Below are positions 4,334 to 62,345 of a stretch of DNA of 64,000 nt, one piece after another. The notes below the pieces were generated by a model. That model saw nothing but the letters and a program-made list of their open reading frames with translations. It did no database searches and was not told where the DNA came from. The translations under genes and the position numbers were made by a program. How positions within the stretch are numbered: position 1 is the stretch's first letter; the number at the start of each line of letters is the position of its first letter. The stretch comes from Macrostomum lignano (Eukaryota), in assembly GCA_002269645.1 (NCBI GenBank), contig NIVC01003277.1, forward strand, positions 43,718 to 107,717, written 5' to 3'.

Positions 4334-4721
4334 GTTCGATTCCTCATTGATTTGATGTTCCTTCTTGCTGTGGCACTTGTACATGTATTAACGCTCACGA
4401 GGGCCCCAGGGCACAGAGAGTGTACATGCCAGAAGATTAGACCACCAAATCTTTGACAGCACTGAAAGCACCACTAGATGGCTCTCTGTACCTCCGGTCC
4501 ACCTCCCAGCTTCTCAATCATTGGACATGCGGATGAATGACGCAGTTGCTTGCGCAGCATCAGAGCCACGGTTAGAAAGTCATTTATCCCAGTTGTCTTT
4601 AACTCCAGCACAAATATTTCTCCTATCGGCGATGCGAAACCTTCCTGTGTCCTTATTGCTGTTTATGGACCAAAGGATGCATCATCAATGGCAGGGGTTG
4701 GTTTTTAGAAACAGAAATTAG

Positions 4722-15600: not shown

Positions 15601-18600
15601 TTATTTGCATTCTATGGTATCAGTCCTTACCTTTTAGGCCATCACATAATACAAGCTTTCACTTCTTGCTTCAGTGTTTCCCATAGACTTCTACAACAGA
15701 TGCACTTGGCTTATCAAGCATCGAGTTTGTGTATTAAAGGGGTACTGTATAAAATGTCTCCTAGCATTTATCCGAAATTATTTGAGTAGAAACAGGCTAC
15801 AGGAAGTTGAAGAGGGATAAATTTTGTGTACATAGTGAAAAGCTGAAGCTCTTGCGATAAAACATAAGACCAGCAGAGAACAGAGAAAATCGGCCTCCAT
15901 CTTTTTTCTGCATGATTTGGCCGTTTCCCGTCCCGAGAATTGAGTAGTCCCTGCAGCAGCCATATACAGCAGTCATAGACAACAGCCATATACAGCAACC
16001 ATAGACAGCAGCCATAGACAGCAGCCATAGACAGCAGCCATAGACAGCAGCCATAGACAGCAGCCATAGACAATCTCTGCCATAGACAGCAGCCATAGAT
16101 AATCTCTGCCATAGACAGCAGCCATAGACAGCAGCCATAGACAACAGTCATAGACAACAGCCATATACAGCAACCATAGACAGCAGCCATAGACAGCAGC
16201 CATAGACAGCAGCCATAGACAGCAGCCATAGACAATCTCTGCCATAGACAGCAGCCATAGATAATCTCTGCCATAGACAACAGCCATAGATAATCTCTGC
16301 CATAGACAGCAGCCATATACAGCAACCATAGACAGCAGCCATAGACAGCAGCCATAGACAGTAGCCATAGACAGCAGCCATAGACAATCTCTGCCATAGA
16401 CAGCAGCCATATACAGCAGCCATAGACAACAGTCATAGACAACAGCCATATACAGCAACCATAGACAGCAGCCATAGACAGCAGTCATAGACAGCAGCCA
16501 TAGACAATCTCTGCCATAGACAGCAGCCATAGATAATCTCTGCCATAGACAGCAGCCATAGACAGCAGCCATAGACAACAGTCATAGACAACAGCCATAT
16601 ACAGCAACCATAGACAGCAGCCATAGACAGCAGCCATAGACAGCAGCCATAGACAGCAGCCATAGACAATCTCTGCCATAGATAGCAGCCATAGATAATC
16701 TCTGCCATAGACAACAGCCATAGATAATCTCTGCCATAGACAGCAGCCATAGACAACAGCCATAGACAATCTCTGCCATAGACAGCAGCCATAGATAATC
16801 TCTGCCATAGACAGCAGCCATAGACAATCTCTGCCATAGACAACAGCCATAGATAATCTCTGCCATAGACAGCAGCCATAGACAATCTCTGCCATAGGCC
16901 GCAGCCATAGACAATCTCTGCCATAGACAGCAGCCATAGACAATCTCTGCCATAGACAGCAGCCATAGACAACAGCCATAGACAATCTCTGCCATAGACA
17001 GCAGCCATAGACAACAGCCATAGACAATCTCTGCCATAGACAGCAGCCATAGACAATCTCTGCCATAGACAGCAGCCATAGACAATCTCTGCCATAGACA
17101 GCAGCCATAGAAATCTCTGCCATAGACAGCAGCCATAGACAATCTCTGCCATAGACAGCAGCCATAGACAATCTCTGCCATAGGCCGCAGCCGTTGGAAC
17201 TCTGCTGTAGAAAAATGCTTGATCCTACACTCTAAGCCTGAATCTGGGGTCAAAATCCTCCTGCTCTTTGAAAAAAAGCAAGATAGAATATTTTCAAGTC
17301 TAATAGCCTGCCTCCCGAACTTTAATTTCTTGACCGAACTTTAGGAGAAAAAAGTTGCATATACTGTACGAGCTATTTATTGTAAAACTGTTAAATTACA
17401 GGGTTTATAGGCAAAGTTGATCACTCATGCCTAGCGCACAAGTAATAGAGTTAAGTCTGCATGCATCATCCCAATTTTGATTAGTACCTTGTGCAGGATA
17501 CACGTGAGCTATTTGCTTCAATATCGCTAAACTCGTTAACGCAGTCGTATATTAGATAAAAATATCCATAGCCACTTCGTCTGCAGAGCTCTTTCATTCA
17601 TCCCACCGCTGCCCACCAGATACATCCCGTTAGCCAAATGAATTATCCCCCCCTTACCTTTGTAGTGCTCTGAGTCTTGCGGTTGGGCAGAAGGGCCACG
17701 CGGCAGTAGGGGTTGACCGATCCGGTGGAGCTGTCCTTTGGCTGCAGGTCGATGGTCTGAATGATGCGCACAGTCAGGATGCCGGTGTCCTCCCGGTAGC
17801 TGAGAGAGAAATTCAGCTGGCCGAGGTTCTCCTCCTGGATGCTCTGGATGGCGCTGGTCTGATTGTACTGCAATTTGGAGGGCGATTCTCCGGAAATGGC
17901 TGATGACTGAAAGGTACTTCTGCTCAACATCCGGGTGCCGATTTGTCTCCCTCAGTTTTATTGTGTGCGCCACCATGCCCTGGCTCTACTGCAGCCATTC
18001 AACATTGAACTGTGTTTGATTCTTTCTGAAGTCAATGCAACCTTTGTTCTTCCTGAATGGCATGCGGTTTAGATATTCTGTTTACGGATTTTCCCTGTGA
18101 ATACGAGGGTTGTGTCAAAGGTTTCTGGCAAGGGAATGCAGCCCCATGGCGCAAGACTAAAATGAAGCCCATGATTTTCAGCCCTCGCAAACAACTCTTC
18201 CGGAACTTCTGACACAATCATTCTTTTCCCAGCAGCTTTTAATGCACCACACGGTACTTCATCTCATGACTTTTCAGGTAAATCGTGCTTCGAAATAATT
18301 ATGATATAATTCCCGAACAAATTCTAAGCTGGTACTGCTCACTCAGGCTCACTTTAAGGCTAAAGGGCGCAAAAAGTCTTCCAAAAAGGGTGCTTTTTCC
18401 AGCCTCCCCCACCTGAGCCGTGCGCCTCCTTTTTCTCTTCTTAGCTTCTCCTGTGCTCGAGACCTGCAGCTCAGTGTGGCGCACCGGCCCACCTTTTCTC
18501 CCTTTCGTTTCCTCCCGGCTCATGTTTGCTTTTGCTGCAAAGAAAACTTTCTTTCGAGGATCATGCAGTTGAAAGCAAAGGCGCTCTCTGAAATTCTATC

Positions 18601-20834: not shown

Positions 20835-22212
20835 AATTAGCTAAGAGTAGCAACGGGGAGCCATCGATTAGCAATGGGGAGCCATAGATTAGCAACAGGG
20901 AGCCAAAGATTAGCAACAGGGAGCCATAGATTAGCAATGAGGAGAGCCATAGATTAGCAACGGGGAGCCATAGATTAGCAACGGGGAGCCATAGATTAGC
21001 AATGAGGAGAGCCATAGATTAGCAACGGGGGTAGCCATAGATTAGCAACGGGGAGCCATAGATTAGCAACGGGGTAGCCATAGATTAGCAACGGGGAGCC
21101 ATAGATTAGCAACGGGGAGCCATAGATTAGCAACGGGGAGCCATAGATTAGCAACGGGGAGCCATAGATTAGCAACGGGGAGCCATAGATTAGCAACGGG
21201 GGAGCCATAGATTAGCAACGGGGAGCCATAGATTAGCAATGGGGAGCCATAGATTAGCAACAGGGAGCCATAGATTAGCAATGAGGAGAGCCATAGATTA
21301 GCATGGATGTAGAGCCATAGATTAGCAATGAGGAGAGCCATAGATTAGCATGGCTGTAGAGCCATAGATTAGCAATGAGGAGAGCCATAGATTAGCAACA
21401 GGAGCCATAGATTAGCAACAGGAGCCATAGATTAGTAACGGGGGAGCCATAGATTAGCAACAGGAGCCATAGATTAGCAATGGGGAGCCATAGATTAGCA
21501 ACAGGGAGCCATAGATTAGCAACAGGGAGCCATAGATTAGCAACAGGGAGCCATAGATTAGCAACAGGGAGCCATAGATTAGCAATGAGGAGAGCCATAG
21601 ATTAGCATGGCTGTAGAGCCATAGATTAGCAATGAGGAGAGCCATAGATTAGCATGGCTGTAGAGCCATAGATTAGCAATGAGGAGAGCCATAGATTAGC
21701 AACAGGAGCCATAGATTAGCAACGGGGTAGCCATAGATTAGCAACAGGAGCCATAGATTAGCAACGGGGGAGCCATAGATTAGTAACGGGAGCCATAGAT
21801 TAGCAACGGGAGCCATAGATTATCAATGAGGAGAGCCATAGATTAGCAACAGGAGCCATAGATTAGCAACGGGGAAGCCATAGATTAGCAACCGGGGAGC
21901 CATAGATTAGCAACCGGGGAGCCATAGATTAGTAACAGGAGCCATAGATTAGCAATGAGGAGAGCCATAGATTAGCAACAGGAGCCATAGATTAGCAACA
22001 GGAGCCATAGATTAGCAACGGGGAAGCCATAGATTAGCAACCGGGGAGCCATAGATTAGCAACCGGGGAGCCATAGATTAGTAACAGGAGCCATAGATTA
22101 GCAATGAGGAGAGCCATAGATTAGCAACAGGAGCCATAGATTAGCAACAGGAGCCATAGATTAGCAACGGGGAGCCATAGATTAGCAACGGGGGTAGCCA
22201 TAGATTAGCAAG
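20835..22212. repeat. About 21-bp minisatellite GAGCCATAGATTAGCAACGGG in a C2-gene intron
   Basis: About 60 variant units. Confidence 0.95.
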
Positions 22213-23080: not shown

Positions 23081-23176
23081 CTAGGGCTAGGGCTAGGGCT
23101 AGGATTAGGGTTAGGATTAGGGTTAGGATTAGGGTTAGGATTAGGATTAGGGTTAGGGTTAGGGTTAGGGTTAGGG
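23081..23176 (+). repeat. Interstitial telomere-like (TTAGGG/TTAGGA/CTAGGG)n block
   Basis: Seen directly; similar blocks at about 23812-23879, 42768-42826 (as CCCTAA), 45116-45145 and 48795-48828. Confidence 0.85.
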
Positions 23177-23700: not shown

Positions 23701-24854
23701 GCTCCACCCACCAATCAAAGATATTTCTTCACTTCTTACTGTGAATTTCAAATAAGAAGTTTTGATTTATACAGGTGGAACTTTTGGCTGTTGCTGAGGA
23801 TAAGTCAAGTAGGGTTAAGACTAGTGCTAGGGCTAGCTAGGGTTAGGGTTAGGGATAGGACTGGCTAGGGCTAGGGTTGAAGTCTAATTGGCTATTTTCG
23901 AGCTGTACAGTTCAGGAACTACAAATCTGCAATGCTATCTTAGTAGGGTGTCTTCACCATGAGGGAAAGACAATGTGTGCTGCATTAAAACTGTCTCTTT
24001 TTTTGACAACAATATTACTTCAGTAGGAAAGAGCCCATTGAGATAGCTTGCGTGATTAATGAAACCTGCCACAAGGGCCGCGGTCAGGTCCGCCTTCCAG
24101 ACGCTGCGTCCAGAACTCCTTGTCCGAGCCTGTCTACTTGGTCGGGGACTCGGCCAGCAGGGGGGGGGGTAGAAAGGGGGGCAAATATTGGCTCCATCTG
24201 GGACCTGGAGTCTTCAGCAGGGGTGTCTTATCGCTGTGTGGCGAGCAGAAACTCGCAGAATCGAGCTGCGGCCTCCTCAACCCCCCTGCCGCCCCCAACA
24301 CCCGAGATGCCGGAAGACGCCAGGGCAGGAGATGAATGACTAAAAGTTAGCCCGAGGTAAAGAGGATGAGATGAATAATGGCGCTCGCACTGACTGACTG
24401 ACTGACCGAGCAGTTTAAGAATTGAGTAGCATGAAGGCTGCGGTTGACCTCAGGAACTGACAGGTCAAGCCCGCTGCTGCTGCCACCTGGCGGCCAGAAA
24501 TTGAAGCAATACCGATGCACTGTTCGAGCATTTTCTCACCTAAGCGACTTACTAGTGATTTCTTATTAGAGGCAGGGAGCTGTGTGCACCTGGTGCACTT
24601 TAAGCGACAAATTGTCACCCAACCGGCGAGAGGCATTACTGCCCATTCTGCCAACATACCCTGAGCAGACATACAGCGGCCCTAACTCGTACACACCACT
24701 GTGCTTTGGGGATTGGCCCTCAATGGCGTTTATTACACGAGCAGCGCCAAAGTCGATATTCCAAGAGCCTCAAATTATTATCTACAGTTTGGTTCTTACT
24801 CATGATAAACATAAAAAGGTAATGCCTAAGGGATAATTAATTACTTTAGAGATC

Positions 24855-25469: not shown

Positions 25470-26520
25470 ACACATTTTGTGTTATGGGTGCCATTTTGTG
25501 TGTCATGGGTGCCATTTTGTGTGTCATGGGTGCCATTTTGTGTGATTGGTTGCCATTTTGTGTCATGGGTGCCATTTTGGGTGTCATGGCAGCCATTTTG
25601 TGTGATTGGTTGCCATTTTGTGTCATGGTTGCTATTTTGTGTGTCACGGGTGCCATTTTGTGTGTCATGGCTGCCATTTTGGCTGTCATGGCTGCTATTT
25701 TTTGGGTGTGCTGGGTGCCATTTTGTGTGTCATGGGTGCCATTTTGTGTGTCATGGGTGCCATTTTGTGTCATGGGTGCCATTTTGTGTGTCATGGGTGC
25801 CATTTTGGGTGTCATGGGTGCTATTTTCTGTTATTGGTTGCCATTTTGTGTCATGGGTGCCATTTTGTGTGTCATGGGTGCCATTTTGTGTGTCACGGGT
25901 GCCATTTTGAGTGCCATGGGTGCCATTTTGTGTGATTGGTTGCCATTTTGTGTGTCGTGGGTGCCATTTTGTGTGTCATGGGTGCCATTTTGGGTGTCAT
26001 GGGTGCCATTTTGTGTGATTGGTTGCCATTTTGTGTCATGGGTGCCATTTTGGGTGTCATGGGTGCCATTTTGTGTGATTGGTTGCCATTTTGTGTCATG
26101 GGTGCCATTTTGGGTGTCATGGTTGCTATTTTTTGAGTGTGATGGGTGCCATTTTGTGTGTCATGGCTGCCATTTTTTGGGTGTCATGGGTGCCATTTTG
26201 TGTGCCATTGGTGCCATTTTGTGTGTCATGGGTGCAATTTGGGTGTCATGGGTGCCATTTTGTGTGTCATGGGTGCCATTTTGTGTGTCATGGCTGCCAT
26301 TTTGTGTCACGGGTGCCATTTTGTGTGTCACGGGTGCCATTTTGTGTGTCATGGGTGCCATTTTGGGTGTCATGGCTGCCATTTTTTGGGTGTGCTGGGT
26401 GCCATTTTGTGTGCCATTGGTGCCATTTTGGGTGTCATGGCTGCCATTTTTTGGGTGTGCTGGGTGCCATTTTGTGTGCCATTGGTGCCATTTTGGGTGT
26501 CATGAGTGCCATTTTTGGAG
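25470..26520. repeat. 19-21-bp minisatellite GGGTGCCATTTTGTGTGTCAT
   Basis: About 50 variant units. Confidence 0.95.
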
Positions 26521-26959: not shown

Positions 26960-27510
26960 GAGAGAGGGAGGACAGAGAGTAACAAAAAAGGGAGATGAAG
27001 GGAGGGAGAGGAAAGGAGGGAGAGGAAGGGAGAGAGAGGAAGAGAGGGAGAGGAAGGGAAGGAGAGGAAGGGAGAGAGAGGGAGAGGAAGGGAGGGAGAG
27101 AGGAAGGGGGAGAGGAAGGGGGAGAGGAAGGGGGGAGAGGAAGGGGGGAGAGGAAGGGGGGAGAGGAAGGGGGGAGAGGAAGGGAGAGAAAGGTTGAGCA
27201 AGGAGGGAGAGGTAGGAAGGGAGAGGAAGGGAGGGAGAGGAAGGGAGGGAGAGGAAGGGAGAGGGTGGAAGGGAGGGAGAGGAAGGGAAGGAGAGGAAGG
27301 GAGAGAGAGAGGGAGAGGTAGGGAGAGAGGAAGGGGGGAGAGGAAGGGAGAGAAAGGTTGAGCAAGGAGGGGAGAGGAAGGGAGTGAGAGGAAGGGAGGG
27401 AGAGGAAGGGAGAGAGAGGAAGGGAGAGAGAGGAAGGGAGAGAGAGGAAGGGAGAGAGAGAGGGAGAGGTAGGAAGAAAGGAAGGGGGAGAGGAAGGGAG
27501 AGGAAGGGAG
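26960..27510. repeat. GA-rich low-complexity purine tract (GGAGAGGAAGG-like)
   Basis: Seen directly. Confidence 0.9.
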
Positions 27511-27696
27511 GGACTTAACTGCAAGGCAGTCCGAAGACGCAGCGGGGAGGCAAGCGCCGCCCATTCCACTAGAGGAAGGGAGGGAGAAGAAGGGAGGGAA
27601 TTGAGGGAGGAAGGGGGGAGAGGAAAATGGAGCTGATGAGAAGTGACAATATGGGCTCTGCTTCCCAGATGGTAGGTACTACTTGCAAATTCTTAC

Positions 27697-28624
27697 GAGG
27701 CCGACTGCCTCCGCCGCCGCTGCTGCCGCCGCTGCCGCCGCTGCCGCCGCCGCTGCAGGTGCCGCAGGAGCCAGCGGCAGTCGCGGCGGAGTTGCGATTC
27801 ATACGGGCCTGCATGATGCGCAGATCGCGCAGCGACTCCTCCAGGCGTTTCTCGAACACCTGCGCCGACGACTCGCCCGTCGAAGCTGCCGAAGTTCGTC
27901 GCTTTTGTCGACTGGTCGGAGAGAGCGGCGGCTGCGTCGGCTGCGACTTCGTCAGCGCGTCGGTCAGGCTGAACCGCTTGGCCGTCGAGACGGGCGCATC
28001 AGCAGCCGCAGCCGATGGTGCAGCTGGAGGCGGACCGCCGGGCGAGCGGAAGCTCGAGCTGCGCTTGTGCCGGTCGGGCGATGACGGAGTCTGGAAGGAC
28101 ATGGCCTGGAATTCGAGGGCTTCGGGCGATGAGCTGGCGGGATCTGCGATTGCCTGGGCTTCGCTCTGCTCGCATTTTTGTACCTCTGGGGATCCCCAGC
28201 TTTCATTGGCTCTGGCCAAGGCTGGGAGGTGGGCGGACAGGCGGATCAAGGAGTAAAATAATCTGCCTACTATAAGGAATGGGATTTAGTTTGTTGAAAT
28301 CCCCTATTCCGGCCCTTTTACTGTCTCAGTGCTTGCCTGCGGGTCTCTGATATCCTACGGGCGGCACGGCACCCCCCGCCCTATCGTCCCCGCTCTCTCC
28401 TCTGTCCCGGACTCGAGCACTTCAATCTCGGAGCACTCTGGGGGCCTGCAGAGTCAAAGAGAATGCAGCAGAGTGGCTGTATCTCGCTTCTCCTTACCCT
28501 GGGGCTTCTCTTCTCCACGCATTATCTGGGACACGCGGGCGGAAGGTTCCCCCCGAGCCCTTAGCCAGATGAAAACGAATTTTTTGCCTTGCTAACCAAA
28601 AAATTGCAATCCCGCAGCCGGCAT
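27697..28624 (-). CDS. Candidate N-terminal exons of the C2 gene (28624-28597 MPAAGLQFF, and a 525-nt exon 28221-27697); whole model about 628 aa with no TM segment
   Basis: Polypyrimidine acceptor ...CCACCTCCCAG at 28222, donor GTAAGA at 27696, donor GTTAGC at 28596; all phase 1 and frame-compatible with the downstream exons; Ser/Pro/Ala-rich open frame. Confidence 0.5.
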
Positions 28625-30434: not shown

Positions 30435-33323
30435 TTAACGACCCCCGCGGCGCCTGAAGCCCCGACCACCGCGCCTGAAGCCGCGACTCCTTGCACGCCT
30501 GAAGCCCCGACCACGGCGCCTGAAGCCCCGACCACGGCGCCTGAAGCCACGACCACCGCGCCTGAATCTCATTCTATGCCGCCGATAGAAGCGTCTGCGA
30601 TGATGATTCCGTGAATGACCATGGCGGAATATGCGAGAACGGCGTCGGTTCAGGACATAGTAGCGACGGTGGTTGTGTGGCCGTTTAGTCCACGAACTGG
30701 TTGTAGCTGGCTCCTCCGAGAGACTGGGTACTGCTGAGGTAACTGACACTGTGCTGGGAGTTGGAGTGGTGGTTACCTCTGGCTCGTTCGTGTCAGAAGC
30801 TAGAGTAGTCTCAGGCTTGATGGTGTCAGGAGCCGGAGTGGTTACAGGCTCTATAGTGCCACCGGATGAAGTTGACGCAGGCTGGTTGGTGTCAGGAGCT
30901 AGAGTACTCTCCGGCTTGACAGTATCGGGAGCCGGAGTGGTTGCAGTCTCGACGGTCTCAGGAGCAAGAGTGGTTGCAGGCTCAACGGTTTCAGGATCCG
31001 CAGTGGTTGCAGGCTCAACGGTCTCAGGATTCGGAGTGGTTGCAGGCTCAACGGTCTCAGGATCCGCAGTGGTTGCAGGCTCAACGGTTTCAGGATCCGC
31101 AGTGGTTGCAGGCTCAACGGTTTCAGGATCCGGAGAGGTTGCAGTCTCGACGGTCTCAGGAGCAAGAGTGGTTGCAGGCTCAACGGTTTCAGGAGCAAGA
31201 GTGGTTGCAGGCTCAACGGTTTCAGTATCCGCAGTGGTTGCAGGCTCAACGGTCTCAGGATCCGCAGTGGTTGCAGGCTTGACGGTCTCAGGAGCTGGAG
31301 TGGTTGCAGGCTCTATAGTAGCAGGTGCTGGAGTGGTTGCAGGCTCGACCGTGTCAGGTGATGGAGTGGTTGCAGGCTCAAGGGTCTCAGGAGCTGGAGT
31401 GGTAGCAGGCTCTATAGTGTCAGGTGCTGGAGTGGTTGCAGGCTCAACGGTTTCAGGAGCTGGAGTGGTTGCAGGCTCTATAGTAGCAGGTGCTGGAGTG
31501 GTTGCAGGCTCAACGGTCTCAGGAGCTGGAGTGGTTGCAGGCTCAACGGTTTCAGTATCCGCAGTGGTTGCAGGCTCAACGGTCTCAGGATCCGCAGTGG
31601 TTGCAGGCTTGACGGTCTCAGGAGCTGGAGTGGTTGCAGGCTCAAGGGTCTCAGGAGCTGGAGTGGTTGCAGGCTCGACCGTGTCAGGTGATGGAGTGGT
31701 TGCAGGCTCAAGGGTCTCAGGAGCTGGAGTGGTAGCAGGCTCTATAGTAGCAGGTGCTGGAGTGGTTGCAGGCTCAACGGTTTCAGGAGCTGGAGTGGTT
31801 GCAGGCTCTATAGTAGCAGGTGCTGGAGTGGTTGCAGGCTCAACGGTCTCAGGAGCTGGAGTGGTTGCAGGCTCTATAGTAGCAGGTGCTGGAGTGGTTG
31901 CAGGCTCAACGGTCTCAGGAGCTGGAGTGGTTGCAGGCTCTATAGTAGCAGGTGCTGGAGTGGTTGCAGGCTCAACGGTCTCAGGATCCGCAGTGGTTGC
32001 AGGCTTGACGGTCTCAGGAGCTGGAGTGGTTGCAGGCTCAAGGGTCTCAGGAGCTGGAGTGGTTGCAGGCTCGACCGTGTCAGGTGATGGAGTGGTTGCA
32101 GGCTCAAGGGTCTCAGGAGCTGGAGTGGTAGCAGGCTCTATAGTAGCAGGTGCTGGAGTGGTTGCAGGCTCAACGGTTTCAGGAGCTGGAGTGGTTGCAG
32201 GCTCTATAGTAGCAGGTGCTGGAGTGGTTGCAGGCTCAACGGTCTCAGGAGCTGGAGTGGTTGCAGGCTCTATAGTAGCAGGTGCTGGAGTGGTTGCAGG
32301 CTCAACGGTCTCAGGAGCTGGAGTGGTTGCAGGCTCTATAGTGGCAGGAGCTGGAGTTGATGCAGGCTTTATAGTGTCAGGTGCTGGAGTGGTTGCAGTC
32401 TCGATGGTCTCAAGTGCTGGAGTGGTTGCAGGCTTGACGGTATCAGGATCCGAAGTGGTTGCAGGCTCTATAGTAGCAGGTGCTGGAGAGGTTGCAGGCT
32501 CAACGGTCTCAGGAGCTGGAGTGGTTGCAGTCTCGACGGTCTCAGGAGATGCAGTGGTTGCAGGCTTGACGGTATCAGGAGCTGGAGTGGTTGCAGGCTC
32601 GACCGTGTCAGGAGATGGAGTGGTTGCAGGCTGGACGGTATCAGGAGCTGGAGTGGTTGCAGGCTTGACGGTATCAGGAGCTGGAGTGGTTGCAGTCTCG
32701 ACGGTCTCAGGATCCGAAGTGGTTGCAGCCTCTATAGTGGCAGGAGCTGGAGTTGATGCAGGCTTTATAGTGTCAGGTGCTGGAGTGGTTGCAGTCTCGA
32801 CGATCTCAGGTGCTGGAGTTGCTTCAGTCTCTGGCTTGATAGTCCCTGCAGCTGGAGTAGTTTGTACGGTTACAGTTGTTACCTCTGGCTCGACTGTATT
32901 AGGAGCTTCAAAGGTGCTTGATTCCGGCTTGCTTGTAGTAGGAGTAGTGCTCAAGTCGGTAGTAGTCTCAGTTGTCACTGGCTTAGCGGTGCTCAATCCG
33001 GAAGTGGCTTCAGGGGTCGCTGAAGCAGTCACAGTGGCCGGTTGCTCCGTGATGAAGCCGCAGTTGATGATGACCCCGGCCTTCAACCCTTCAACGTAGG
33101 CTATCTTGCCAGCCTCGCTGGCGCAGGTGTTGGAGCTCGGGAACGAGGCGCAGAAGTCAATCAGTCTCTGCTGGCTGTAGACGCCAATGCAGGACTCGCA
33201 CAGTTTGATTCGCGGCTTGTTGAAGCACTCGTCCAGGGTGACGGACTCGGTTGGTGGTAGCAGCCTGCTGTCAGCCATGACGGAGGCCGCCAGCAGCAGC
33301 AGGTTCAGCCAGTTCGGTCGCAT
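30435..33323 (-). CDS. Secreted mucin-like protein, 962 aa, single exon: signal peptide, 6-Cys domain, about 60 x 11-aa Thr/Pro/Glu repeats (ATTPAPETVEP), Arg/His/Gly-rich tail
   Basis: MRPNWLNLLLLAASVMA signal-like N-terminus; uninterrupted ORF across 33-bp repeats with mostly synonymous or conservative variation; non-repetitive coding flanks. Confidence 0.85.
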   Translation of the reverse strand: MRPNWLNLLLLAASVMADSRLLPPTESVTLDECFNKPRIKLCESCIGVYSQQRLIDFCASFPSSNTCASEAGKIAYVEGLKAGVIINCGFITEQPATVTASATPEATSGLSTAKPVTTETTTDLSTTPTTSKPESSTFEAPNTVEPEVTTVTVQTTPAAGTIKPETEATPAPEIVETATTPAPDTIKPASTPAPATIEAATTSDPETVETATTPAPDTVKPATTPAPDTVQPATTPSPDTVEPATTPAPDTVKPATTASPETVETATTPAPETVEPATSPAPATIEPATTSDPDTVKPATTPALETIETATTPAPDTIKPASTPAPATIEPATTPAPETVEPATTPAPATIEPATTPAPETVEPATTPAPATIEPATTPAPETVEPATTPAPATIEPATTPAPETLEPATTPSPDTVEPATTPAPETLEPATTPAPETVKPATTADPETVEPATTPAPATIEPATTPAPETVEPATTPAPATIEPATTPAPETVEPATTPAPATIEPATTPAPETVEPATTPAPATIEPATTPAPETLEPATTPSPDTVEPATTPAPETLEPATTPAPETVKPATTADPETVEPATTADTETVEPATTPAPETVEPATTPAPATIEPATTPAPETVEPATTPAPDTIEPATTPAPETLEPATTPSPDTVEPATTPAPATIEPATTPAPETVKPATTADPETVEPATTADTETVEPATTLAPETVEPATTLAPETVETATSPDPETVEPATTADPETVEPATTADPETVEPATTPNPETVEPATTADPETVEPATTLAPETVETATTPAPDTVKPESTLAPDTNQPASTSSGGTIEPVTTPAPDTIKPETTLASDTNEPEVTTTPTPSTVSVTSAVPSLSEEPATTSSWTKRPHNHRRYYVLNRRRSRIFRHGHSRNHHRRRFYRRHRMRFRRGGRGFRRRGRGFRRRGRGFRRARSRGFRRGGRGFRRRGGR

Positions 33324-33744
33324 CTCTCACCACCGTCACACCTCAATGCAAACCAAATTTGAATTTATTGGACGTCAGAAGCACGTTGATAGAGCTTGAG
33401 AAACTAATTTTCAGCCTGTTTTAATATTTTCCATTGATTGCGTAACTCAAAACTCGGGTGTTGCAAGTAAAAAGTAATTATCTTGAGCTATATAACTATA
33501 AATAGCTTTATGTAACTATATGAAATTCCGTGCCTATTATACAGCTTTAATCACGGTGCAACCTCGTGCGAGAGAAAGAGTTCAAGGACATCTGAAGTTT
33601 GTTGTCATCACTTGTAAGTACTAGAAATACTATTACTATTATTTTTATTTTTAATATTAATAGTATTATTAATATTCAATAACTGCGCAAGCCGAAGAGA
33701 TGATTTCATAATTACTAATTAGTACATCGAGAGAATTACAAAAT

Positions 33745-33995
33745 AGAAAAACAACAACAACAACAGAATACGCAGGTTAGCGTCACAGGGCGCGCTTCAA
33801 GGCCAGGTCGCGAACGAACGCCACGCCGCCGGCCGAATCCGGGGCGCCGGCGTCAGCCAGCAGGCAGTCGACGAAACGCCGAGTGCGCGCCTGTCGCCGC
33901 CGGTAGGGTGCCTGCAGCGTCAGCAGCAGCACCTCCTGCACCGGGTCTGGGCAGTACGACTCGGCGCGGATGATGTGGCCTGCCAGCTGGAGTCG
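33745..33995 (-). mobile_element. 5'-truncated LINE (RTE/CR1-type) 3' end with a (TGT)n tail
   Basis: Minus frame LAGHIIRAESYCPDPVQEVLLLTLQAPYRRRQARTRRFVDCLLADAG...KRAL* resembles the post-RT LAGH..R....LLW..RRG..R..Y.D.L motif; followed by TGTTGTTGT. Confidence 0.65.
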
Positions 33996-34989
33996 AAAAT
34001 AGAAAAAGCTAGTAAATAAAAATATTTAGCTAAAATAGTCTCGCCCGTAAACAGAATGATCGAGAGTCGGCTCGAACTTTTTTCGGCAATCACCAAGATG
34101 AAGCATCAGGGCAGGTGCATTCTGGCTTGTGGCATGTCTTTGATGAATTTTGCTAAGATTTCCATTTTGTCTCGAGCTTCTTGTGCCATTGAATAAAACA
34201 CTTTATCCTCTGCAGTAAGCTTTTTAAAAAATTCGAAACTTTATCAAGGAAAGCTCAGGTAGGAGTATTAGTTTTCATTTTTCAGCACAAAAATGTTATT
34301 GCTTTCGATAGGAGGCAGACCCAATGTTAATTTTTGATATGCTGTGCCTTTCTTATGTAGCTCTATTTATATTCACAAAGCTATTCGTTTAGAAAGGAGG
34401 AATGTGTTAATTTTTTATTCTACGTACAATTACACGTGTCCTGTGCCTAAAAATAGTATGGCTCGGGTCATTGATTTTATAAATATTATAAATATTTTAT
34501 CATTCCTAGCTGACTGTGTAAACAAAATGTGTAACAAATTTATAAAACCAATTTGAGTCTAGCTGTACAATGCATTTTTATGATTTTTAGGCACAGGGAA
34601 TATTGAAATTTATCCTAGATTTCTTGTTCAAAATATATCATGTGAAGCACTATAAAATCTCTAACTACTCTGAATTCAGACACATTGTCAAGGTCTTTTT
34701 GTAGCTCGACAGAGTCAGATATTTTGACTTTAAATTTCACCTCTAAGTGCTCCCTATTAGCTGGGTAATTTCTGGGCTAACATTGAGGTCTTTAAGCCAA
34801 ATAACAAAAATTGTTTACCATTGTCTAATGCAACTTTTTAGGCCAAAGAAGACAAGATGAAAAGGTATCTTGTTGCTCTTTTTTGTCTAGCAAGAGACAA
34901 TGCAGTGGCAATGTAATTCGAAGTGCGGTAGGCCCTTTCTGTTGCCTCTGTGTCTGGCTGGCAGTGATTTCTGGACAGTGAGTCCTTTC

Positions 34990-35280
34990 CAAGCGCGTCG
35001 CCACCGGGGGGGGGGGGCAGGGGGGACATGTCCCCTACACCTTACCTTGTGACCCGTTGTGGCAATCAATAATTTTTCTTCCGGGAGCCAAAATATAGCG
35101 CCTTCGGCGCCAAAACGAGTGCCTGCGGCGCCAAATGAGTGCCTGCGGCGCCAAAATGAAGTGCTGACAACATCGATTCTCAAAAAATGGACATGTACAC
35201 GTAGGAATTTAGTCATGTACATGTACATATTGAATTCTTGGCTTTGTCCCCCCACCATAAAATCCACGGCGACGCCCCTG
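34990..35280. mobile_element. hAT-like MITE, 291 bp, imperfect 13-bp TIR CA(A/G)G(C/G)GCGTCGCC, 8-bp TSD GTCCTTTC
   Basis: GTCCTTTC at 34982-34989 and 35281-35288; subterminal GGGGGGAC/GTCCCCCC motifs. Confidence 0.8.
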
Positions 35281-37366: not shown

Positions 37367-38580
<1,214 letters not shown>

Positions 38581-40002: not shown

Positions 40003-41487
40003 ATGTCTTCTGAAGCTGCCAGCGAGAGCCAGCCGCTGATCGGAGAGCCGTCCGTGCCAGAAGCAGCAGCCCCAGCTCCCATGAGCTTCCGGTTGAAGCA
40101 GACGGCATTTCTGCTGCTACTAATTAAGCTATGCAGCAACACCTACGAGTACCAGATGATGGCCTACAGCGCTGAGCTGCAGGCGAACTCCAGCGAGACT
40201 GGGAACTGCAGGTACAGCAGGCAGCCGCAGAACTGCTTGTCCAGCCTGGCCTGCAAAGCCTCGGCTGCTGCGGCCTACGCGATGCCAACCCTGGGCGGCG
40301 TTCTGTGCGACGTCCTGCTCGACTGCCTGCCCACTCTCTGGCTGGGCACGGGGGTCCACGCGGCCGGCTCCATCCTGCTTACCGCCATGGACCGTTTGAA
40401 TATCCTCTGCCACCTGCCCATCTACCTGCTTACCTGGTCGGCCGTGCTGCTCCATCTCAGCATCAACGATGCCACGATAATTCACGCTCTGCTGCGGCTG
40501 TCCAACCACAGCAGGAACCGGCAAGTGCTTGTCTGTCTGTACTTTGCTGCGGCAGCCGCTGGGGAGACATTGGGAACCGTGCCCTCACTGCTCCGTCAAG
40601 AGCAGAGTGACAGCTTTGAGATTATTTGCTTGGTCTTCGGGATGGCGCACCTGGTCTGCATGTCGCAGCTGGCCATCTCAGCGCCGCGGACTGCAAGAAT
40701 TCGCTTTGAGATGCCTCGACTAAGACAGCTGCGCAGGTTCTACCTGATCACGGCCGGCACGGTTCTCCCACTGGCCTGCTTGGTGCTGAGCAGGCTGTCG
40801 CTCTACTGGCACCAGATCCAATACTTCACCCGTGCTAGCGGAGACCAGGCGATCCTGGCCTACTACGTGCCCTTCTCCGGGTACCAGACGGCCATGATTT
40901 TGTTCAGCCTGGTTGGCGCAGCCGCTGTGGGGAGGTCCGCCGTCCCCGCCTGGTTCGATCGCATCATTCGCATCCGCGCTGGTCTCGGGCTGGCCGCGGC
41001 CAACGAGCTGCTGCTGATGCTGCTGAGCCTGCTGGACCATCACGGCGTCATCAGCATGGCGAGCTGGACGCCTCTGTCAATCTGGTCCGCCTACTTTGCG
41101 GTGTCATTCCTGGACGGTGCGGCCAACGCGCTCGCCATTCTGACCATCTACGAGGTTGCGTACAGCATCGCCAACAAGAGCGCCAAGGCTACGATGGTGG
41201 GCGTTTTCTACACATTGTGGGGTCTCGCCGTGCTGCTCGGCTCATCCGTGCTCAGCTTTTTACAATCTGTTGGAGCTGTGGTCCTGGACGATGCAGACGG
41301 CAGTCACGGACAGAAGCCGATGGTTCACAATGCCTATGCAGTGATGATAGCTCTGCAGCTGATTGCCATTGTTTACTGGGAGAAAATTTCCTGGCCGCTT
41401 GCTTCGGTAATGCTGCCTTCGGACGCCGAGCTTGACGAGCAGTTCCGCGAGATTCACGAGGAGTCGCTGACCAGTGCCGATGAATGA
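40003..41487 (+). CDS. Intronless 494-aa MFS transporter, divergent SLC15/POT (PHT-like)
   Basis: Many hydrophobic helices; AYAMPTLGGVLCD (helix 2 motif), TLWLGTGVHAAGSILL, and YEVAYSIANKSAKATMVGVFY (SLC15 helix 10-11-like motif); N-terminal ESQPLI dileucine signal. Confidence 0.75.
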   Translation: MSSEAASESQPLIGEPSVPEAAAPAPMSFRLKQTAFLLLLIKLCSNTYEYQMMAYSAELQANSSETGNCRYSRQPQNCLSSLACKASAAAAYAMPTLGGVLCDVLLDCLPTLWLGTGVHAAGSILLTAMDRLNILCHLPIYLLTWSAVLLHLSINDATIIHALLRLSNHSRNRQVLVCLYFAAAAAGETLGTVPSLLRQEQSDSFEIICLVFGMAHLVCMSQLAISAPRTARIRFEMPRLRQLRRFYLITAGTVLPLACLVLSRLSLYWHQIQYFTRASGDQAILAYYVPFSGYQTAMILFSLVGAAAVGRSAVPAWFDRIIRIRAGLGLAAANELLLMLLSLLDHHGVISMASWTPLSIWSAYFAVSFLDGAANALAILTIYEVAYSIANKSAKATMVGVFYTLWGLAVLLGSSVLSFLQSVGAVVLDDADGSHGQKPMVHNAYAVMIALQLIAIVYWEKISWPLASVMLPSDAELDEQFREIHEESLTSADE

Positions 41488-42639: not shown

Positions 42640-43620
42640 AAACCTTGTAAACCTTGACATGTCAGTAATTCCCCCCCCACAAGCTTTAACATATCAACTT
42701 CCCCCCTTGACATCTCAGCAATGCCCCAAATAAGCCTTGGAAATCTAAAAATATCTGTCAACCTTCTAACCCTAACCCTAGCCTAACCCTAACCCTAACC
42801 CTAACCCTAACCCTAACCTAACCCTAAAGCATTGAAATTTCAGTAATTCTCTCTAAGAGTCATTATAGCACTACTACAGCATTATAGCGATTCCCTGCAA
42901 GCCTCGACATCGTAGAGATTCCCAAATGAATCTCTTAACTTCGACATGAAGCTTATTTTATTTTTTACATTACGCTTTTTTTATCAGCGATCCCTCCCCA
43001 GAGGAGGCATCAAATAATGTAATAAAAAGTTTTCAATAAACTACATGTAGCTTCTGACTTTAGCCTTGAAATCTCATTTATACCCCCGTGAACCTTGACA
43101 TCTCAGATATTCCCCCGTAAGTCTTAACATGTCAGCGATGGCCCCCATAAACCTTGAAATCTAAAAAATCCCCTGTTATTCTGTTAACCTTGAAACCCGA
43201 TAAAATATAACCCTCAACCCACACCTGACCTAAACCTAACTTTAACCCAACCTAAAGCCTTGAAATCTCAGCAATTCTTCTCCCCTAAGCCTTGACATTT
43301 TAGTGATTCCTTCTTTAAGAATCACAGCACTATAACGATTTCCACCAAGCTTTGACATCGTAGCAATTCCCAAATGAATCTTTTAACTTCGACATGACTT
43401 TTCTTTTATGTATACGTAGTGCTACTTTTATTTTTTACATGACTCTTCTTCTATCAGCGCCCCCCCCGTGGCGAGCCAACAAATAATGCAATAAAAAAAT
43501 TGAGTAAAGTACATGAACTTTGAAGTAGCTTCTGACTTTTGCTTTGACATCTCAGAACCCCCCCCGTAATCTCAGTTATTCTCTGAGAGCCTTTACGTCT
43601 CAGTTTTTCTCCCCAGCACA
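42640..43620. repeat. Degenerate array of about 32-bp AGCCTTGACATCTCAGCAATTCCCC-like units with embedded CCCTAA blocks
   Basis: Same unit family as 50200-52260. Confidence 0.65.
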
Positions 43621-44379: not shown

Positions 44380-47300
44380 CTCAGTCAGTCAGTATCAGTT
44401 AACAATATGGTTACGCAATCTAAATCAAGTCTGGTGCTACGCTTCCACACTGCATTTTCAATTCAAGTCGGAGTTACAATTCAGTTATGATGCAATCTAT
44501 TTCAGAATCAGAATTCAACCAGTCAGTTTTTTCTCTAGCATTCTTACAATGCATTTCAAGTCGAAAAGTTTGCTTGACCTTTGCAAAAAAGCATGTTTTT
44601 CGAATATTTAATGCCTTTAGCATCAAGAAATTTCTTAGCCACGATGCATGTACAGTCACGGGAAAATTTCTGATCGAACAGTGCAAGTTCGAACAAAATC
44701 GGTACAGCCATTTTTTCTCTAATCGATCACATAGACACAGACAGACCATTTTTAGTATATACGAGGCCAACTCCTCCTCTGGAGGAGAAAGGGGAAGAAT
44801 TCCCATCACCGATACTCCATTCCCTGAAATGCCATTCCCTGAATCCCATCATCCAACTCCTCTCCGCGAAACTGAATATCATCGAAATCTTCTCCGTAAA
44901 AGAGAACTCCATCAAACACCTCTCCGTGAAACTGACATTCATAAAAATCCCATCCGAGAAATAGAAATCCTCTCCGTGAAACTGGACTCCATGGAAATCC
45001 TCTCCGTGAAACTGACATCCATCAAAATCGTCTCCGCGAAACAGAAATTCTCTCCATTAAACTGGACTGAATCGAAATTTTCTCCGTAAAAAAGAATCAA
45101 CTCTCAGGATTTAGTGGTTAGGGTTAGGGTTAGGGTTAGGGTTAGAGCTACAACGCAGCAGCGTGTTGAACCAATTGAATTAATTGAATGCGCAACCGAT
45201 TTCACAGTCAGTCAGTATCAGTCTCGGTAAAAGTTAACAAAAAGATTGCGCAAACTAAATCAACCCTCCAATACACAGCGACTGACCCCCTTCCAATACG
45301 CAGTGGCAATTAAAAGTTGAACCCCCCCCTCTCACCAACTGTTGGGGGGTTGGTCGAACCCCCATTGAACTCCAAAATGAGTACACTGCCGAAAGTTAAA
45401 AGTATGGAAATCGTTTTTTAAATGCTGTGCTTTTTGTTTTCACATTTAAAGCAAACAACTTATATCCCCGAACTCAGTATTGCAAGATCTTTCCAGTAAT
45501 ATAAGTCTCTCCTCTGAAAGTTTAAAACTCGAGGAACAGTTAGCGCTTGAAATTTCCTGATTTAAAGCATTAAAGTATCGAGTGTACATTCACAGCCTGC
45601 TAAAGAGGCTCGCAAGTTTATTCATTAAATTTTACTGCCCAGCAAATACACATGGCTGCCTATTGAATACCGCCGATAATAAAACCAATTAAATCTCGAC
45701 ACAGTCCTAGCTATCTCCTTACACTGTACAACTGCTATGTACACTCAGCCCAAGCCCAACCCCCTCCCATTCCGGGGAATCGTTAAATTTAATTGAATCC
45801 CCCAACACGCGGGGGGGGGGGTTATTTGCATTGAACGCGGAACACGCGCACCCACCACCCCTCAATACACAGCGGCCCGCGGGCGGAGGTTGGGGTGGCT
45901 ATTTTTACAAACTGGCTGCAGCCCCAGGCAGAGTGGCCAAAGAAGGTTATTGAGGGTTAAAAAAACAGTTTTCTGCTTTTTTAGGGATCTTAAAATGTAA
46001 AAATGAAAGATTAAAATAGCTATAAACCCAATCCGGAAAATTTGCAGTTTTCCCATATAAGTTTCAACGCTGACTTGCCAGTAGTTTAGGAGAAAAATTG
46101 CAACACACAAACAAACATCGCACCACTTTTAGTATTAAGAGATAAATCAACCCTCCAGTACACAGAGACCGACCCCTTTTCAATACGCAGTGGCAGTTAG
46201 AAATTGAACCCCCAACTGTTGGGGGCATTGAACTAAAAATGAGTACAATCTTTGCAAAAAGCTAAAAGTATGGAAATAGTTTTTTTATGCTGTGCTTTTA
46301 GTCTTTATATTTAAAGCAAACAATTTATATCCTTGAACTCAGCGTTGCAAGATCTTTTCAGCAGTATAAGTCTCTTCTCCTAAAGTTTAGAACTCGAAGA
46401 GCAGTTAGCATTTGAAAGTTCCCGTTTTAAAGCATTGAAATATCGAGTGTACGTTCACTGCCTGCCAAAGAGGCTCGCAAGTTTATTCATTAATTACACC
46501 GGCCGGCTATTACACAGGGCAGCCTATTGAAAGGCACAGATAATAAAACAAATTGATGGCGCAACCGATTTCACAGTCAGTCAGTATCAGTCTCAGTTAA
46601 AGTTAACAAAAACATTGCGCAATCTAAATCAACCCTCCAATACACAGCAGCTGTGAGAAGTTAAACCCTCCCCCAACTTTATCTATTACGTCTCGCAAAA
46701 CTGAGTACAATCTTTGCAGCAAGTTAAAAGTATGGAAATCGTTTTTTAAATTATGTGCTTTTTCTTTTCATATTTAAAGCAAACAACTTATATCCCCGAA
46801 CTCAGCGTTGCAAGATCTTTCCAGCAATATAAGTTTCTCTTTTCAAAGTTTAAAACTCGAGGAACAGTTAGCGCTTGAAATTTACCGACTGCTTGCCTGA
46901 CAGACTCGCAAGTTTGTTCATTGAATTTCACTGCCCAGCTAATACACAGGGCCGATAATAAAACCAATTGAATCTCGGCACAGTTTTATCTGTTCACAAC
47001 AGCTATGTACACTCAGCCCAAGCCCAACCCCCGTTCCGGGGAATCATTAAATTTAACCCAACCCCCCGACACGCGGGGGTTTTATTTGCATTGAACCCAG
47101 AACACGCGCACCCACCACCCCTCAATACACAGCGGCCCGCGGGCGGAGGTTGGGGTGGCTATTTTTACAAACTGGCTGAAGCCCCAGGCAGAGTGGCAAC
47201 AGAAGGTTATTGGGGTCAAAAAGGCAGTTTTCTGCTTTTTTGAGGATCTTAGAAATTAAAATTTCAGAATTAAAATAGCCTATAGCCGACCTCGGATAAT

Positions 47301-55796: not shown

Positions 55797-56534
55797 TCAG
55801 TCAAAAGGCGACACGCACTCGCACAGAACTCTCGAAACGCCAAGATTTTCTGGAATGTCGCTAAGAGCTGACAGGAGGCTGTATCTTGCGATGGCATTTT
55901 CAGCGCCTCCATGATTGTTCGGCTCCGTGCTGCCAAAGACACTCGGGCTGACGCTGATGTTGCAGCCGACCCAGAAGAATCCGCCAGCTGGCTCAGGACT
56001 GCCGGGCTGCTGGTAGCCTCCGAGCCAGAACGACTTCCTAGAGCTGTGGTGGACAAAGATAGTCTCGACATGGCTCATCTCCTCAGCGCTGGTCACGTCG
56101 GCCATGATGACCAGACCGCTGTCTGACTCGCACTTCTGTCTGCTCGGCCACCAAGCCCCGATGCCAGAGTACAGCCTGTACTTCACTCCGCACAGGTCCA
56201 TGCCGTAGCCAGACGGACACAGCGCGCCCGTCTCAAGTCCCTGTTGGGATTTCATAAACACCCGGCCTCTCCTGGAGCAGCTGCAGTTCTTCACCGACTT
56301 GCTGCACTTGTCAAACACGAACAGCTGGCACGGAACCTCAGTCACGCTGAACGCTTGGCAGCTGGGGTCGCGGCTGCACAGAGCAGCGCAGCCAATCTTG
56401 CTGTCCTCTTTGGAGTACGTCTGGACAAACTCGCTGTTGATGCACAGGCTGACATCGGTGAGGCTGTACAGCAGCAGGCTGGCACTGCTGAAGGCGCAGC
56501 GCAAAGTCAGCATCGCGACTATAAGGAGCTGCAT
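55797..56534 (-). CDS. Secreted PAN/apple + C-type lectin domain protein, about 245 aa, single exon (ATG at 56534)
   Basis: Signal-like MQLLIVAMLTLRCAFSSA; PAN-type CAALCSRDPSCQAF..C; CTLD motifs CPSGY, W..SRQKC, FWLGG, FFW, EPNN and LCE. Confidence 0.82.
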   Translation of the reverse strand: MQLLIVAMLTLRCAFSSASLLLYSLTDVSLCINSEFVQTYSKEDSKIGCAALCSRDPSCQAFSVTEVPCQLFVFDKCSKSVKNCSCSRRGRVFMKSQQGLETGALCPSGYGMDLCGVKYRLYSGIGAWWPSRQKCESDSGLVIMADVTSAEEMSHVETIFVHHSSRKSFWLGGYQQPGSPEPAGGFFWVGCNISVSPSVFGSTEPNNHGGAENAIARYSLLSALSDIPENLGVSRVLCECVSPFD

Positions 56535-61594: not shown

Positions 61595-61639
61595 CCGGTT
61601 CTGATTCCATCGCATTCTCATTATCAGTGGAATTCACTT

Positions 61640-62345
61640 CATTATCCATGGAATGTCCCTCATCCACGAAATTCCCTTGAATATCCATGGAATTCTACTC
61701 ATTCATGGAATTCCCCTTGTTATCTATTATCTCATTATCCATGGAATTCCCCTCAATATCCATGGAATTCCCTCAATATCCATGGAATTCCCTCAATATC
61801 CATGGAATTCCCCTCAATATCCATGGAATTCCCTCAATATCCATGGAATTTCTCTCATTATTCATGGAATTCCCCCTCAATATCCATGGAATTCCCCTCA
61901 ATATTCATGGAATTCCCCTCAATATCCATGGAATTCCCCTCAATATCCATGGAATTCCCCTCAATATCCATGGAATTCCCCTCAATATCCATGGAATTCC
62001 CCTCAATATCCAAGGAATTCCCCTCAATATCCATGGAATTCCCCTCAATATCCATGGAATTCCCCTCAATATCCATGGAATTCCCTCAATATCCATGGAT
62101 ATCCATGGAATTCCCCTCAATATCCATGGAATTCCCCTCAATATCCATGGAATTCCCCTCAATATCCATGGAATTCCCCTCAATATCCATGGAATTCACC
62201 TCAATATCCAAGGAATTTCCCTCGTTATCCCTGGAATTCCCCTCATTATCCATGGAATTTCCCTCATTATCCATGGAATTTCCCTCATTATCCATGGAAT
62301 TCCCCTCATTATCCATGGAATTCCCCTCATTATCCATGGAATTCC
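61640..62345. repeat. 20-21-bp minisatellite CCATGGAATTCCCCTCAATAT
   Basis: About 33 copies immediately downstream of METTL18. Confidence 0.96.

Follow-up and report, generated by a model that had tools for sequence, protein, structure and literature searches.

We describe an open reading frame (ORF) at 30435-33323 of a 64,000-nucleotide stretch of DNA from the flatworm Macrostomum lignano (NCBI GenBank assembly GCA_002269645.1, contig NIVC01003277.1, positions 43,718 to 107,717 of the forward strand; hereafter the window, in which positions are counted unless stated otherwise). Its product would join, in a single chain, a signal peptide, a six-Cys head, a long acidic stalk of 11-residue repeats and an extremely basic Arg-rich tail (Table 1). 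This is very probably a functional protein-coding gene, and its sequence indicates a previously unlisted gene that is restricted to the lineage of M. lignano and has a secreted product. As to function, we favor, with a probability of about 40%, a non-polymerizing secreted mucin whose Arg/aromatic tail may act as a salt-tolerant sticker for anionic glycans.

The ATG is the first possible start, since a TGA precedes it in frame by two codons; the polypeptide has a mass of ~97 kDa. The signal peptide, already claimed in a preliminary description of this stretch, is found by sequence rules at aa 1-17. It is made up of a basic n-region (MRPN), a Leu-rich hydrophobic h-region (WLNLLLLAASV) and a terminal VMA followed by DS, and inspection places the small residues of V-x-A at positions -3/-1 of the predicted cleavage site. 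The same description had proposed a 6-Cys domain, and all six Cys of the protein do lie in the head, at residues 33, 42, 45, 58, 67 and 88, with the spacing C-x8-C-x2-C-x12-C-x8-C-x20-C. The small head would thereby be capable of forming disulfides. To our knowledge this spacing (8-2-12-8-20), compared by eye, is unlike that of Kazal, Kunitz, EGF, ShK or peritrophin-A domains. An AlphaFold2 model of the head, built from the single sequence, shows four short helices at low confidence (predicted local distance difference test, pLDDT, 52.7; predicted template modeling score, pTM, 0.37) and, being judged too poor for this reason, was left out of fold comparison. Outside the head, no 19-mer reaches a Kyte-Doolittle value of 1.6 or above and the C-terminus is Arg-rich, ending in RRRGGR, so that the protein lacks a transmembrane (TM) segment and a glycosylphosphatidylinositol (GPI) signal, in agreement with the preliminary description. 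N-x-S/T sequons are absent from the whole protein.

The stalk contains 61 units in register, close to the 60 or so Thr/Pro/Glu 11-mers first noted. Tandem Repeats Finder (TRF) reports a 33-bp period with 57.3 copies at 30928-32819 and 0% indels, versus 1-17% in most other long arrays of the window. Over 782 aa, the middle block consists of 27.7% Thr (31.6% Ser+Thr) and 21.6% Pro, with a net charge of -111 and an isoelectric point (pI) of 4.05; within the repeats, Asp+Glu amount to 15.9% and Lys to 1.7%. The protein thereby combines two features of a mucin-like Pro/Thr/Ser (PTS) protein, a rule-based signal peptide and a long Pro/Thr/Ser tandem-repeat region. Judged by composition alone, the acidic Thr/Pro/Ala/Glu stalk of ~780 residues would be densely O-glycosylated and extended in shape.

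The whole tail spans aa 878-962, that is 85 residues with a net charge of +39 and a pI of ~12, of which 45% are Arg and 16% Gly. It holds 38 Arg, 14 Gly, 8 Phe, 7 His, 3 Tyr and one Lys, and neither Asp nor Glu. The interval 30435-30686, first described as an 83-aa tail, indeed translates to 83 aa with the same 38 Arg, 14 Gly, 8 Phe, 7 His and 3 Tyr and no acidic residue, and the RRRGRGF repeats reported there are encoded by a 21-bp tandem repeat, of which TRF counts 5.4 copies at 30450-30566. Only the final 9 nt of the first half of the tail overlap this repeat. Because the first half thus lies essentially outside it, the basic character of the tail is not a microsatellite effect alone. No other stop-free stretch of 85 aa, in any of the six frames of the window, is as rich in Arg as the tail (38 Arg, no acidic residue); elsewhere the maximum is 26 Arg.

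Table 1. Features of the mucin-like gene and its flanks, in window coordinates
Feature	Position	Strand	Residues	Remarks
ORF	30435..33323	minus	962 aa	complete, intron-less; TAA stop at 30435-30437; by translation
Predicted signal peptide	33273..33323	minus	aa 1-17	MRPNWLNLLLLAASVMA; cleavage before DS; sequence rules only
Orphan 6-Cys head domain	33039..33272	minus	aa 18-95	from Cys positions and third-position GC content
Linker	32799..33038	minus	aa 96-175	irregular, Thr/Ser/Pro-rich
Stalk	30786..32798	minus	aa 176-846	61 in-register tandem 11-aa (33-bp) repeats, consensus EPATTPAPETV; from TRF and register listing
Spacer	30693..30785	minus	aa 847-877	EPEVTTTPTPSTVSVTSAVPSLSEEPATTSS; degenerate, Thr/Ser/Pro; kept in all three copies
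Tail, first half	30558..30692	minus	aa 878-922	WTKRPHNHRRYYVLNRRRSRIFRHGHSRNHHRRRFYRRHRMRFRR; non-repetitive, Arg/His/Tyr/Phe-rich
Tail, second half (RGF heptads)	30438..30557	minus	aa 923-962	GGRGF RRRGRGF RRRGRGF RRARSRGF RRGGRGF RRRGGR
Candidate promoter and 5' untranslated region	33324..33764	minus		~440 bp, common to all three copies
TATA-like motif TATAAT	33536..33541	minus
TATA-like motif TATATA	33489..33494	minus
Candidate polyadenylation signal ATTAAA	30223..30228	minus		206 nt past the stop; putative role

Each of the three paralogous loci in the assembly carries the gene, ~4 kb downstream of a neighbor encoding sperm-tail PG-rich repeats (SHIPPO); M. lignano has a partly duplicated karyotype, which fits three copies. 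The locus on NIVC01003277.1 (L003) holds the identical 962-aa ORF, that on NIVC01000573.1 (L002) a 1098-aa version with a longer, clearly diverged array of 70 units (vs 61), and that on NIVC01000709.1 (L001) a 956-aa version. Head identity among the three copies is 98-99% (99% for L002), with one non-synonymous and three synonymous changes. Compared with L003, the L002 tail has lost one 21-bp heptad in frame and shows two synonymous changes and one Ile-to-Arg change; with block charges of -144/+36, the acidic/basic pattern is retained. The tail is in frame in two of the three copies, and an ATTAAA lies 200-220 nt past the stop in all of them. The single-chain architecture of Cys head, acidic PTS stalk and Arg tail, as first described from one locus, holds against the two further genomic copies.

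Over the first 285 nt of the gene, L001 equals L002 and has four differences from L003; further downstream, L001 equals L003 and not L002. The copies form a mosaic, which may have arisen by gene conversion or recombination among them.

Since minisatellites in the window yield long meaningless ORFs, length alone proves nothing, and the case for a coding gene rests with other features. The GC content at third codon positions (GC3) of the head is 0.84, in a region of ~45% GC, and exons of the neighboring cadherin, SHIPPO, C2 and membrane-protein genes range from 0.68 to 0.82. The array has been remodeled between copies, from 61 to 70 units, and the frame is never broken over 2.9-3.3 kb. Entropy at the three codon positions of the array is 0.46, 0.26 and 0.73, the third position being the most variable. 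Only the frame of the ORF is stop-free through the array on the sense strand, along with one frame on the antisense strand. At the join of stalk and tail a single frame is open, which is that of the tail, and this is also kept in the diverged paralog. Furthermore, Arg codon usage in the tail is similar to that of neighboring genes, and the absence of indels from the array and the ATTAAA shared by the three copies likewise favor a coding gene.

On the opposite strand, the 33-bp array is also spanned by an 808-aa ORF with a TTG start and GAGVVAGSTVS repeats (30673-33099, plus strand), a side effect of the stop-free repeat unit.

Searches for relatives bore out the earlier statement that the protein belongs to no known family: Pfam, NCBIfam, the PDB, collections of 5.8 billion and 1.84 billion proteins and metagenome contigs were searched without finding a relative, and neither the Cys domain nor the tail, when searched separately as had been proposed, matched a characterized family. 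With Pfam, neither the whole protein nor its head or tail alone matched a family at E<=0.1. NCBIfam matches to PspC (pneumococcal; 111 bits against a cut-off of 500) and to DivIVA/Wag31 were rejected as Pro-rich low-complexity artifacts. A HMMER search of the head over the 1.84 billion representatives returned a lone match (P0001, E 3e-4), a bacterial repeat protein without the Cys pattern, which we regard as spurious. For the tail with its junction, none of the 3,745 word candidates from the 5.8 billion proteins reached E<=1. A PDB sequence search gave no meaningful match to head or tail, none of 255 head pattern matches in metagenome contigs was confirmed, and four signature peptide strings had no match in the full-text literature. 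On present data, the predicted protein is an orphan.

How might such a protein work? The suggestion of the preliminary description, that of a mucus, adhesive or granule-condensing protein, appears physically plausible. The tail would bind polyanions by pairing of guanidinium groups with carboxylate or sulfate and by Arg-aromatic contacts. It would dock onto the acidic glycosylated stalks of neighboring molecules, leading to compaction in the secretory granule, and after release the same contacts would produce a reversible, non-covalent mucus or adhesive network. Alternatively or additionally, the tail may tether the brush to an anionic glycocalyx or to the substratum. Electrostatics would then replace the disulfide polymerization or the TM/GPI anchors of other mucins. 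One tail (+39) could neutralize about one-third of one stalk (-111); each chain would therefore be a monovalent donor and a multivalent acceptor, a geometry that would suit charge-driven granule compaction and a reversible network.

Published work offers several precedents for this chemistry. In the same species, anionic glycans are the proposed binding partners, in seawater, of the Lys/Arg-rich regions of Mlig-ap1; attachment is prevented by heparin, and release by free Lys/Arg or a cationic peptide (PMC6410801). Other flatworms secrete separate low-complexity proteins rich in G/R/K(/H/S), termed ap3 (PMC9229212). Hyaluronate, an anionic polysaccharide, forms coacervates with Arg-rich protamine, which differs from poly-Lys in re-associating with it at high salt (PMC9705477).

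Several observations weigh against a functional mucin with a sticky tail, and some of them bear on the very existence of a gene. The public gene set records no gene at any of the three loci, and an exact-sequence look-up finds no public entry for the 962-aa protein. A word search with the head among the 5.8 billion proteins, NCBI entries of M. lignano included, returned nothing at E<=1. The array has a GC3 of 0.35, a codon usage atypical for the genome. The non-coding flanks of the copies are ~96% identical, and because the copies are only ~4% diverged even in non-coding DNA, the ratio of non-synonymous to synonymous substitution rates (dN/dS) rests on 1-3 substitutions per segment; these are too few for proof of purifying selection (one non-synonymous vs three synonymous in the head, one vs two in the tail). 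In L001 (18400-18756 of that locus, ~30500 in the window), one G is missing from a GGGG run: the frame changes to a Gly/Ala/Val sequence (GAVVGASG...), half of the Arg tail is lost, and the stop comes 148 nt further downstream. Beyond the possible lack of a gene, the two charge blocks are far from balanced (-111 vs +39), so that self-neutralization would be partial. The supplements of the adhesion paper PMC6410801 contain none of the four signature strings, which is a weak negative, nor do the seminal-fluid supplements of PMC5977470, the files of which are small and may hold no sequences. Finally, the 85-aa tail contains eleven di- or tribasic runs, which are candidate convertase sites.

The absence of a recorded gene and of a matching public protein, the codon usage of the array, the frameshifted tail and the low divergence between copies may all be taken to indicate that the ORF is non-functional, either decaying or never expressed, and owes its length to two repeats, a stop-free 33-bp minisatellite and a 21-bp microsatellite, in a genome crowded with such arrays. 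The window has 82 TRF rows, and several arrays yield long spurious ORFs. However, an ATG preceded by an in-frame stop is followed by a textbook signal peptide and a unique 6-Cys domain of high GC3, all in frame into the array; the array itself is free of indels, varies mostly at third positions and has changed in length without a frame break; and the half of the tail without repeats is extremely basic as well. Furthermore, annotations based on short-read transcriptomes routinely miss tandem-repeat genes. As to the frameshift, a single missing G in an otherwise 100% identical region (the C-terminal DNA of L001 matches L003) is typical of a long-read homopolymer error, which is what the deletion looks like, and we set it aside as evidence against the tail; it could also be a real, recent tail-less or null allele. 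On balance, a non-functional ORF seems improbable.

The basic runs point to another possibility, namely that the tail is a processed pro-region. Furin or proprotein convertase (PC)-type enzymes, together with carboxypeptidases, would cut the di- and tribasic runs in the secretory pathway, leaving a tail-less, purely acidic mucin and short cationic His/Arg/Tyr/Phe peptides, histatin- or protamine-like in composition. Such peptides could serve as antimicrobial or signaling peptides in mucus, or cleavage could regulate surface binding, as it does for the C-terminal heparin-binding tails of some secreted vertebrate proteins. In support of this view, eleven runs of two or more basic residues occur within 85 aa, and the sole R-x-[KR]-R site (aa 919-922) falls exactly at the border between the His/Tyr-rich and RGF-repeat halves of the tail. 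Full cleavage would yield repeated GRGF/GGRGF units as well as the fragments PHNH, YYVLN and SRIFRHGHSRNHH. Furin trims the basic tails of EC-SOD and class-3 semaphorins, and the small secreted mucin MUC7 bears a cationic His-rich domain. The arrangement of GRGF/GGRGF units between RR/RRR runs recalls a neuropeptide precursor; however, no Gly stands before the basic runs as an amidation donor, acidic spacers of the neuropeptide type are absent, and the GRGF fragments are too short for typical antimicrobial peptides. Moreover, the >3,600 aa of Lys/Arg-rich sequence in Mlig-ap1 survive secretion in the same organism, and the protein is detected in footprints (PMC6410801), so that a polybasic stretch need not be degraded. 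We thus regard a processed tail as rather unlikely and retain an intact, sticky tail as the preferred reading.

Chemically, the predicted protein is closest to the cationic regions of flatworm ap1/ap3, although it departs from their defining domain content and size. The flatworm adhesion proteins (Mlig-ap1; Mile-ap3 and Tmed-ap3, of GRK/GRKHS composition; the O-glycosylated ap2) are also secreted and without homologs outside flatworms, and they likewise include extreme cationic G/R/K(/H/S) low-complexity sequence, thought to bind anionic glycans, alongside glycosylated repeat proteins (PMC6410801, PMC9229212). However, ap1-3 measure 3,700-14,800 aa and carry VWD, C8, TIL, EGF, C-type lectin, TSP1 or LDLa domains, whereas the present protein has 962 aa and no Pfam domain. 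In the ap proteins, cationic and glycosylated functions reside on separate molecules; here they are fused in one chain. The Lys/Arg regions of Mlig-ap1 exceed 3,600 aa, whereas the tail has 85 aa, is Arg/Phe-based and contains a single Lys. No sequence likeness to ap1-3 was detected for head or tail among the 5.8 billion proteins.

Other counterparts resemble the protein in layout but share no sequence with it. Lubricin (PRG4) is a secreted non-gel-forming mucin with KEPAPTT-like Pro/Thr/Ala/Glu repeats, whose small end domains adsorb the brush for boundary lubrication. Layout and repeat composition are similar in our protein, but the PRG4 repeats are zwitterionic (Lys + Glu) where these are almost purely acidic, and PRG4 ends in somatomedin-B and hemopexin domains in place of an orphan 6-Cys head and a disordered poly-Arg tail without Pfam match. 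MUC7 is a monomeric secreted mucin without VWD or cystine-knot domains, in which a short PTS core is joined to a His-rich, histatin-like cationic segment with binding and antimicrobial roles. That segment is N-terminal, short and Lys/His-based, whereas the present one is C-terminal, 85 aa long and 45% Arg, with RGF heptads; the two have no sequence relation. The polybasic heparin-binding retention tails of EC-SOD, of long VEGF/PDGF isoforms and of class-3 semaphorins are disordered, tether proteins without an anchor and are often trimmed by furin. These vertebrate tails comprise 10-30 residues on folded signaling proteins or enzymes; here 85 residues with a charge of +39 are attached to a polyanionic mucin that is itself a possible ligand.

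Bioadhesion coacervates, such as sandcastle-worm cement and hyaluronate-protamine, rely on the condensation of oppositely charged macromolecules in secretory granules; Arg-rich polycations pair with anionic polymers and remain bound to them at high salt (PMC9705477). In these systems polyanion and polycation are separate molecules, whereas here both lie on one chain and are unbalanced (-111/+39). Likeness to protamines and to RGG/GAR boxes is one of composition only: the first half of the tail is like protamine P2, and the RGRGF of the second half is like Gly-Arg-rich boxes. Protamines and RGG proteins are nuclear or cytosolic nucleic-acid binders without a signal peptide, in contrast to the signal peptide and PTS stalk found here. 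We accordingly rejected a protamine or sperm nuclear basic protein, as the Arg segment ends a 962-aa signal-peptide protein without a protamine match in the PDB or Pfam, and an RGG/GAR RNA-binding protein, as the RGRGF repeats come with no RRM or KH domain by Pfam and with predicted secretory routing. Nor does the protein fit the larger mucin classes. Pfam detects no VWD-C8-TIL assembly, no C-terminal cystine knot and no SEA domain; with only six Cys, at aa 33-88, a gel-forming mucin was set aside, and so was a membrane-tethered mucin, given the lack of a SEA domain, TM segment or GPI signal. We would class the protein as a small non-gel-forming mucin with a sticky end, not as a new category beyond secreted mucin-like proteins. 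We know of no described protein that joins a PTS stalk of net charge -111 to a polyarginine block of net charge +39 in one secreted chain.

Other roles are conceivable. The acidic glycosylated stalk could act in the duo-gland organ as its negatively charged releasing (de-adhesion) factor: in competition for the Lys/Arg regions of Mlig-ap1 it would prevail over the anchor-cell glycocalyx, and the animal would detach. The Arg tail would then have the sole task of condensing the protein in the small releasing-gland vesicles. The published model needs a secreted, negatively charged molecule, whose anti-adhesive effect heparin mimics, and the releasing vesicles are positive for periodic acid-Schiff (PAS), that is for carbohydrate, with low protein density (PMC6410801). 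Such staining would suit a mucin of net charge -111 with carbohydrate as most of its mass, and the identity of the factor was still lacking in 2021-2022 (PMC8621496, PMC9229212). However, the authors of the model proposed a small molecule (PMC6410801), and a cationic tail would by itself favor sticking to the glycocalyx over release from it; we consider this role highly improbable.

The same physics could also operate in a reproductive secretion, either prostate/seminal fluid or an egg glue of the cement or shell glands, with the Arg tail binding to sperm, antrum or egg surfaces. Seminal-fluid candidates in M. lignano are typically orphan, fast-evolving, repeat-rich and secreted (PMC5977470), and the sperm-tail gene immediately upstream provides a weak hint. 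Yet gene neighborhood in animals is no evidence of co-expression, and the signature strings are missing from the supplements of the seminal-fluid screen, limited as these are. We consider a reproductive role quite improbable next to the mucus or adhesive function preferred here.

Turning to the surroundings of the gene, the copies differ upstream of 33765 by an insertion or deletion of 1.5-1.9 kb. A stretch of ~1.5 kb (33765-35246), ending ~440 bp upstream of the ATG, is present in L003 and L001 and not in L002. It holds a GC-rich exon-like ORF (33783-33992) and other ORFs, without Pfam matches, and may be a transposon remnant, or L002 may have undergone a deletion; Pfam gave no support to a reading of this 1.5-kb insertion as a retrotransposon. 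Further upstream on the same strand, the SHIPPO gene (37367-38112) is 98% identical to BOX15_Mlig006970g2, the protein of which is encoded on three contigs of the assembly. Downstream lies a C2-domain gene (10587-11429 and 27569-28249, minus strand), for which products of 467-589 aa are called at its start in L001 and L002. Its first exon seemingly follows the mucin gene by ~2 kb and the C2 exon comes ~17 kb further on, so that the introns of this gene hold several large minisatellite arrays.

Minisatellite density in the 64 kb is exceptional. Arrays occur at 1-1703, 15954-17170, 20844-22211, 25473-26515, 26988-27530, 61617-62345 and 62664-63366; the window starts with a 20-bp satellite in 86 copies, and many arrays give spurious ORFs of 200-400 aa in several frames. 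Short interstitial arrays of TTAGGG, a hexamer of telomere type, with the variants TAGGGT and TAGGGC and the complement CTAACC, are found at 23082-23176, 23810-23878, 42766-42827 and 45111-45145. Cadherin-repeat exons followed by a TM segment (2344-4350, plus strand) suggest a protocadherin-like gene, and a 24-bp tandem repeat of 9.8 copies (2950-3183) lies between two cadherin ORFs. The 499-aa ORF at 13639-15138 (minus strand) combines a TNP-like RNase H domain, a weak match to the P-element transposase helix-turn-helix and a low GC3 (0.43), and appears to be a THAP9/P-element-type transposase copy. A complete single-exon ORF of 494 aa (40003-41487, plus strand; GC3 0.76) with ~8-9 hydrophobic segments matches no Pfam family at E<=0.1 and lacks an exact public entry; it may encode another unlisted orphan, a multi-pass membrane protein. 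A 292-aa ORF (55797-56675, minus strand) resembles a C-type-lectin-like protein by its WLGG, FFWVG and EPNN motifs, as judged by eye; its only Pfam match, to PAN_4, is weak (E 0.033). The window gave no matches in Rfam or tRNA scans.

M. lignano is the main model of reversible underwater adhesion, for which the accepted mechanism sets polycationic protein regions against polyanionic glycans. With its long polyanionic glyco-stalk and its polyarginine/aromatic block in a single chain, the protein would be a natural candidate in this adhesion chemistry or in gliding mucus, and block-polyampholyte materials that self-complex and tolerate salt could take it as a simple natural template. The gene also illustrates how the public gene set of a model organism can lack repeat-rich orphan secreted genes, although secreted orphans of low complexity and uncharacterized function are common. 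If unexpressed, it would be a mere curiosity of a minisatellite-rich genome; in situ hybridization and RNA interference, both routine in M. lignano, make the question cheaply testable.

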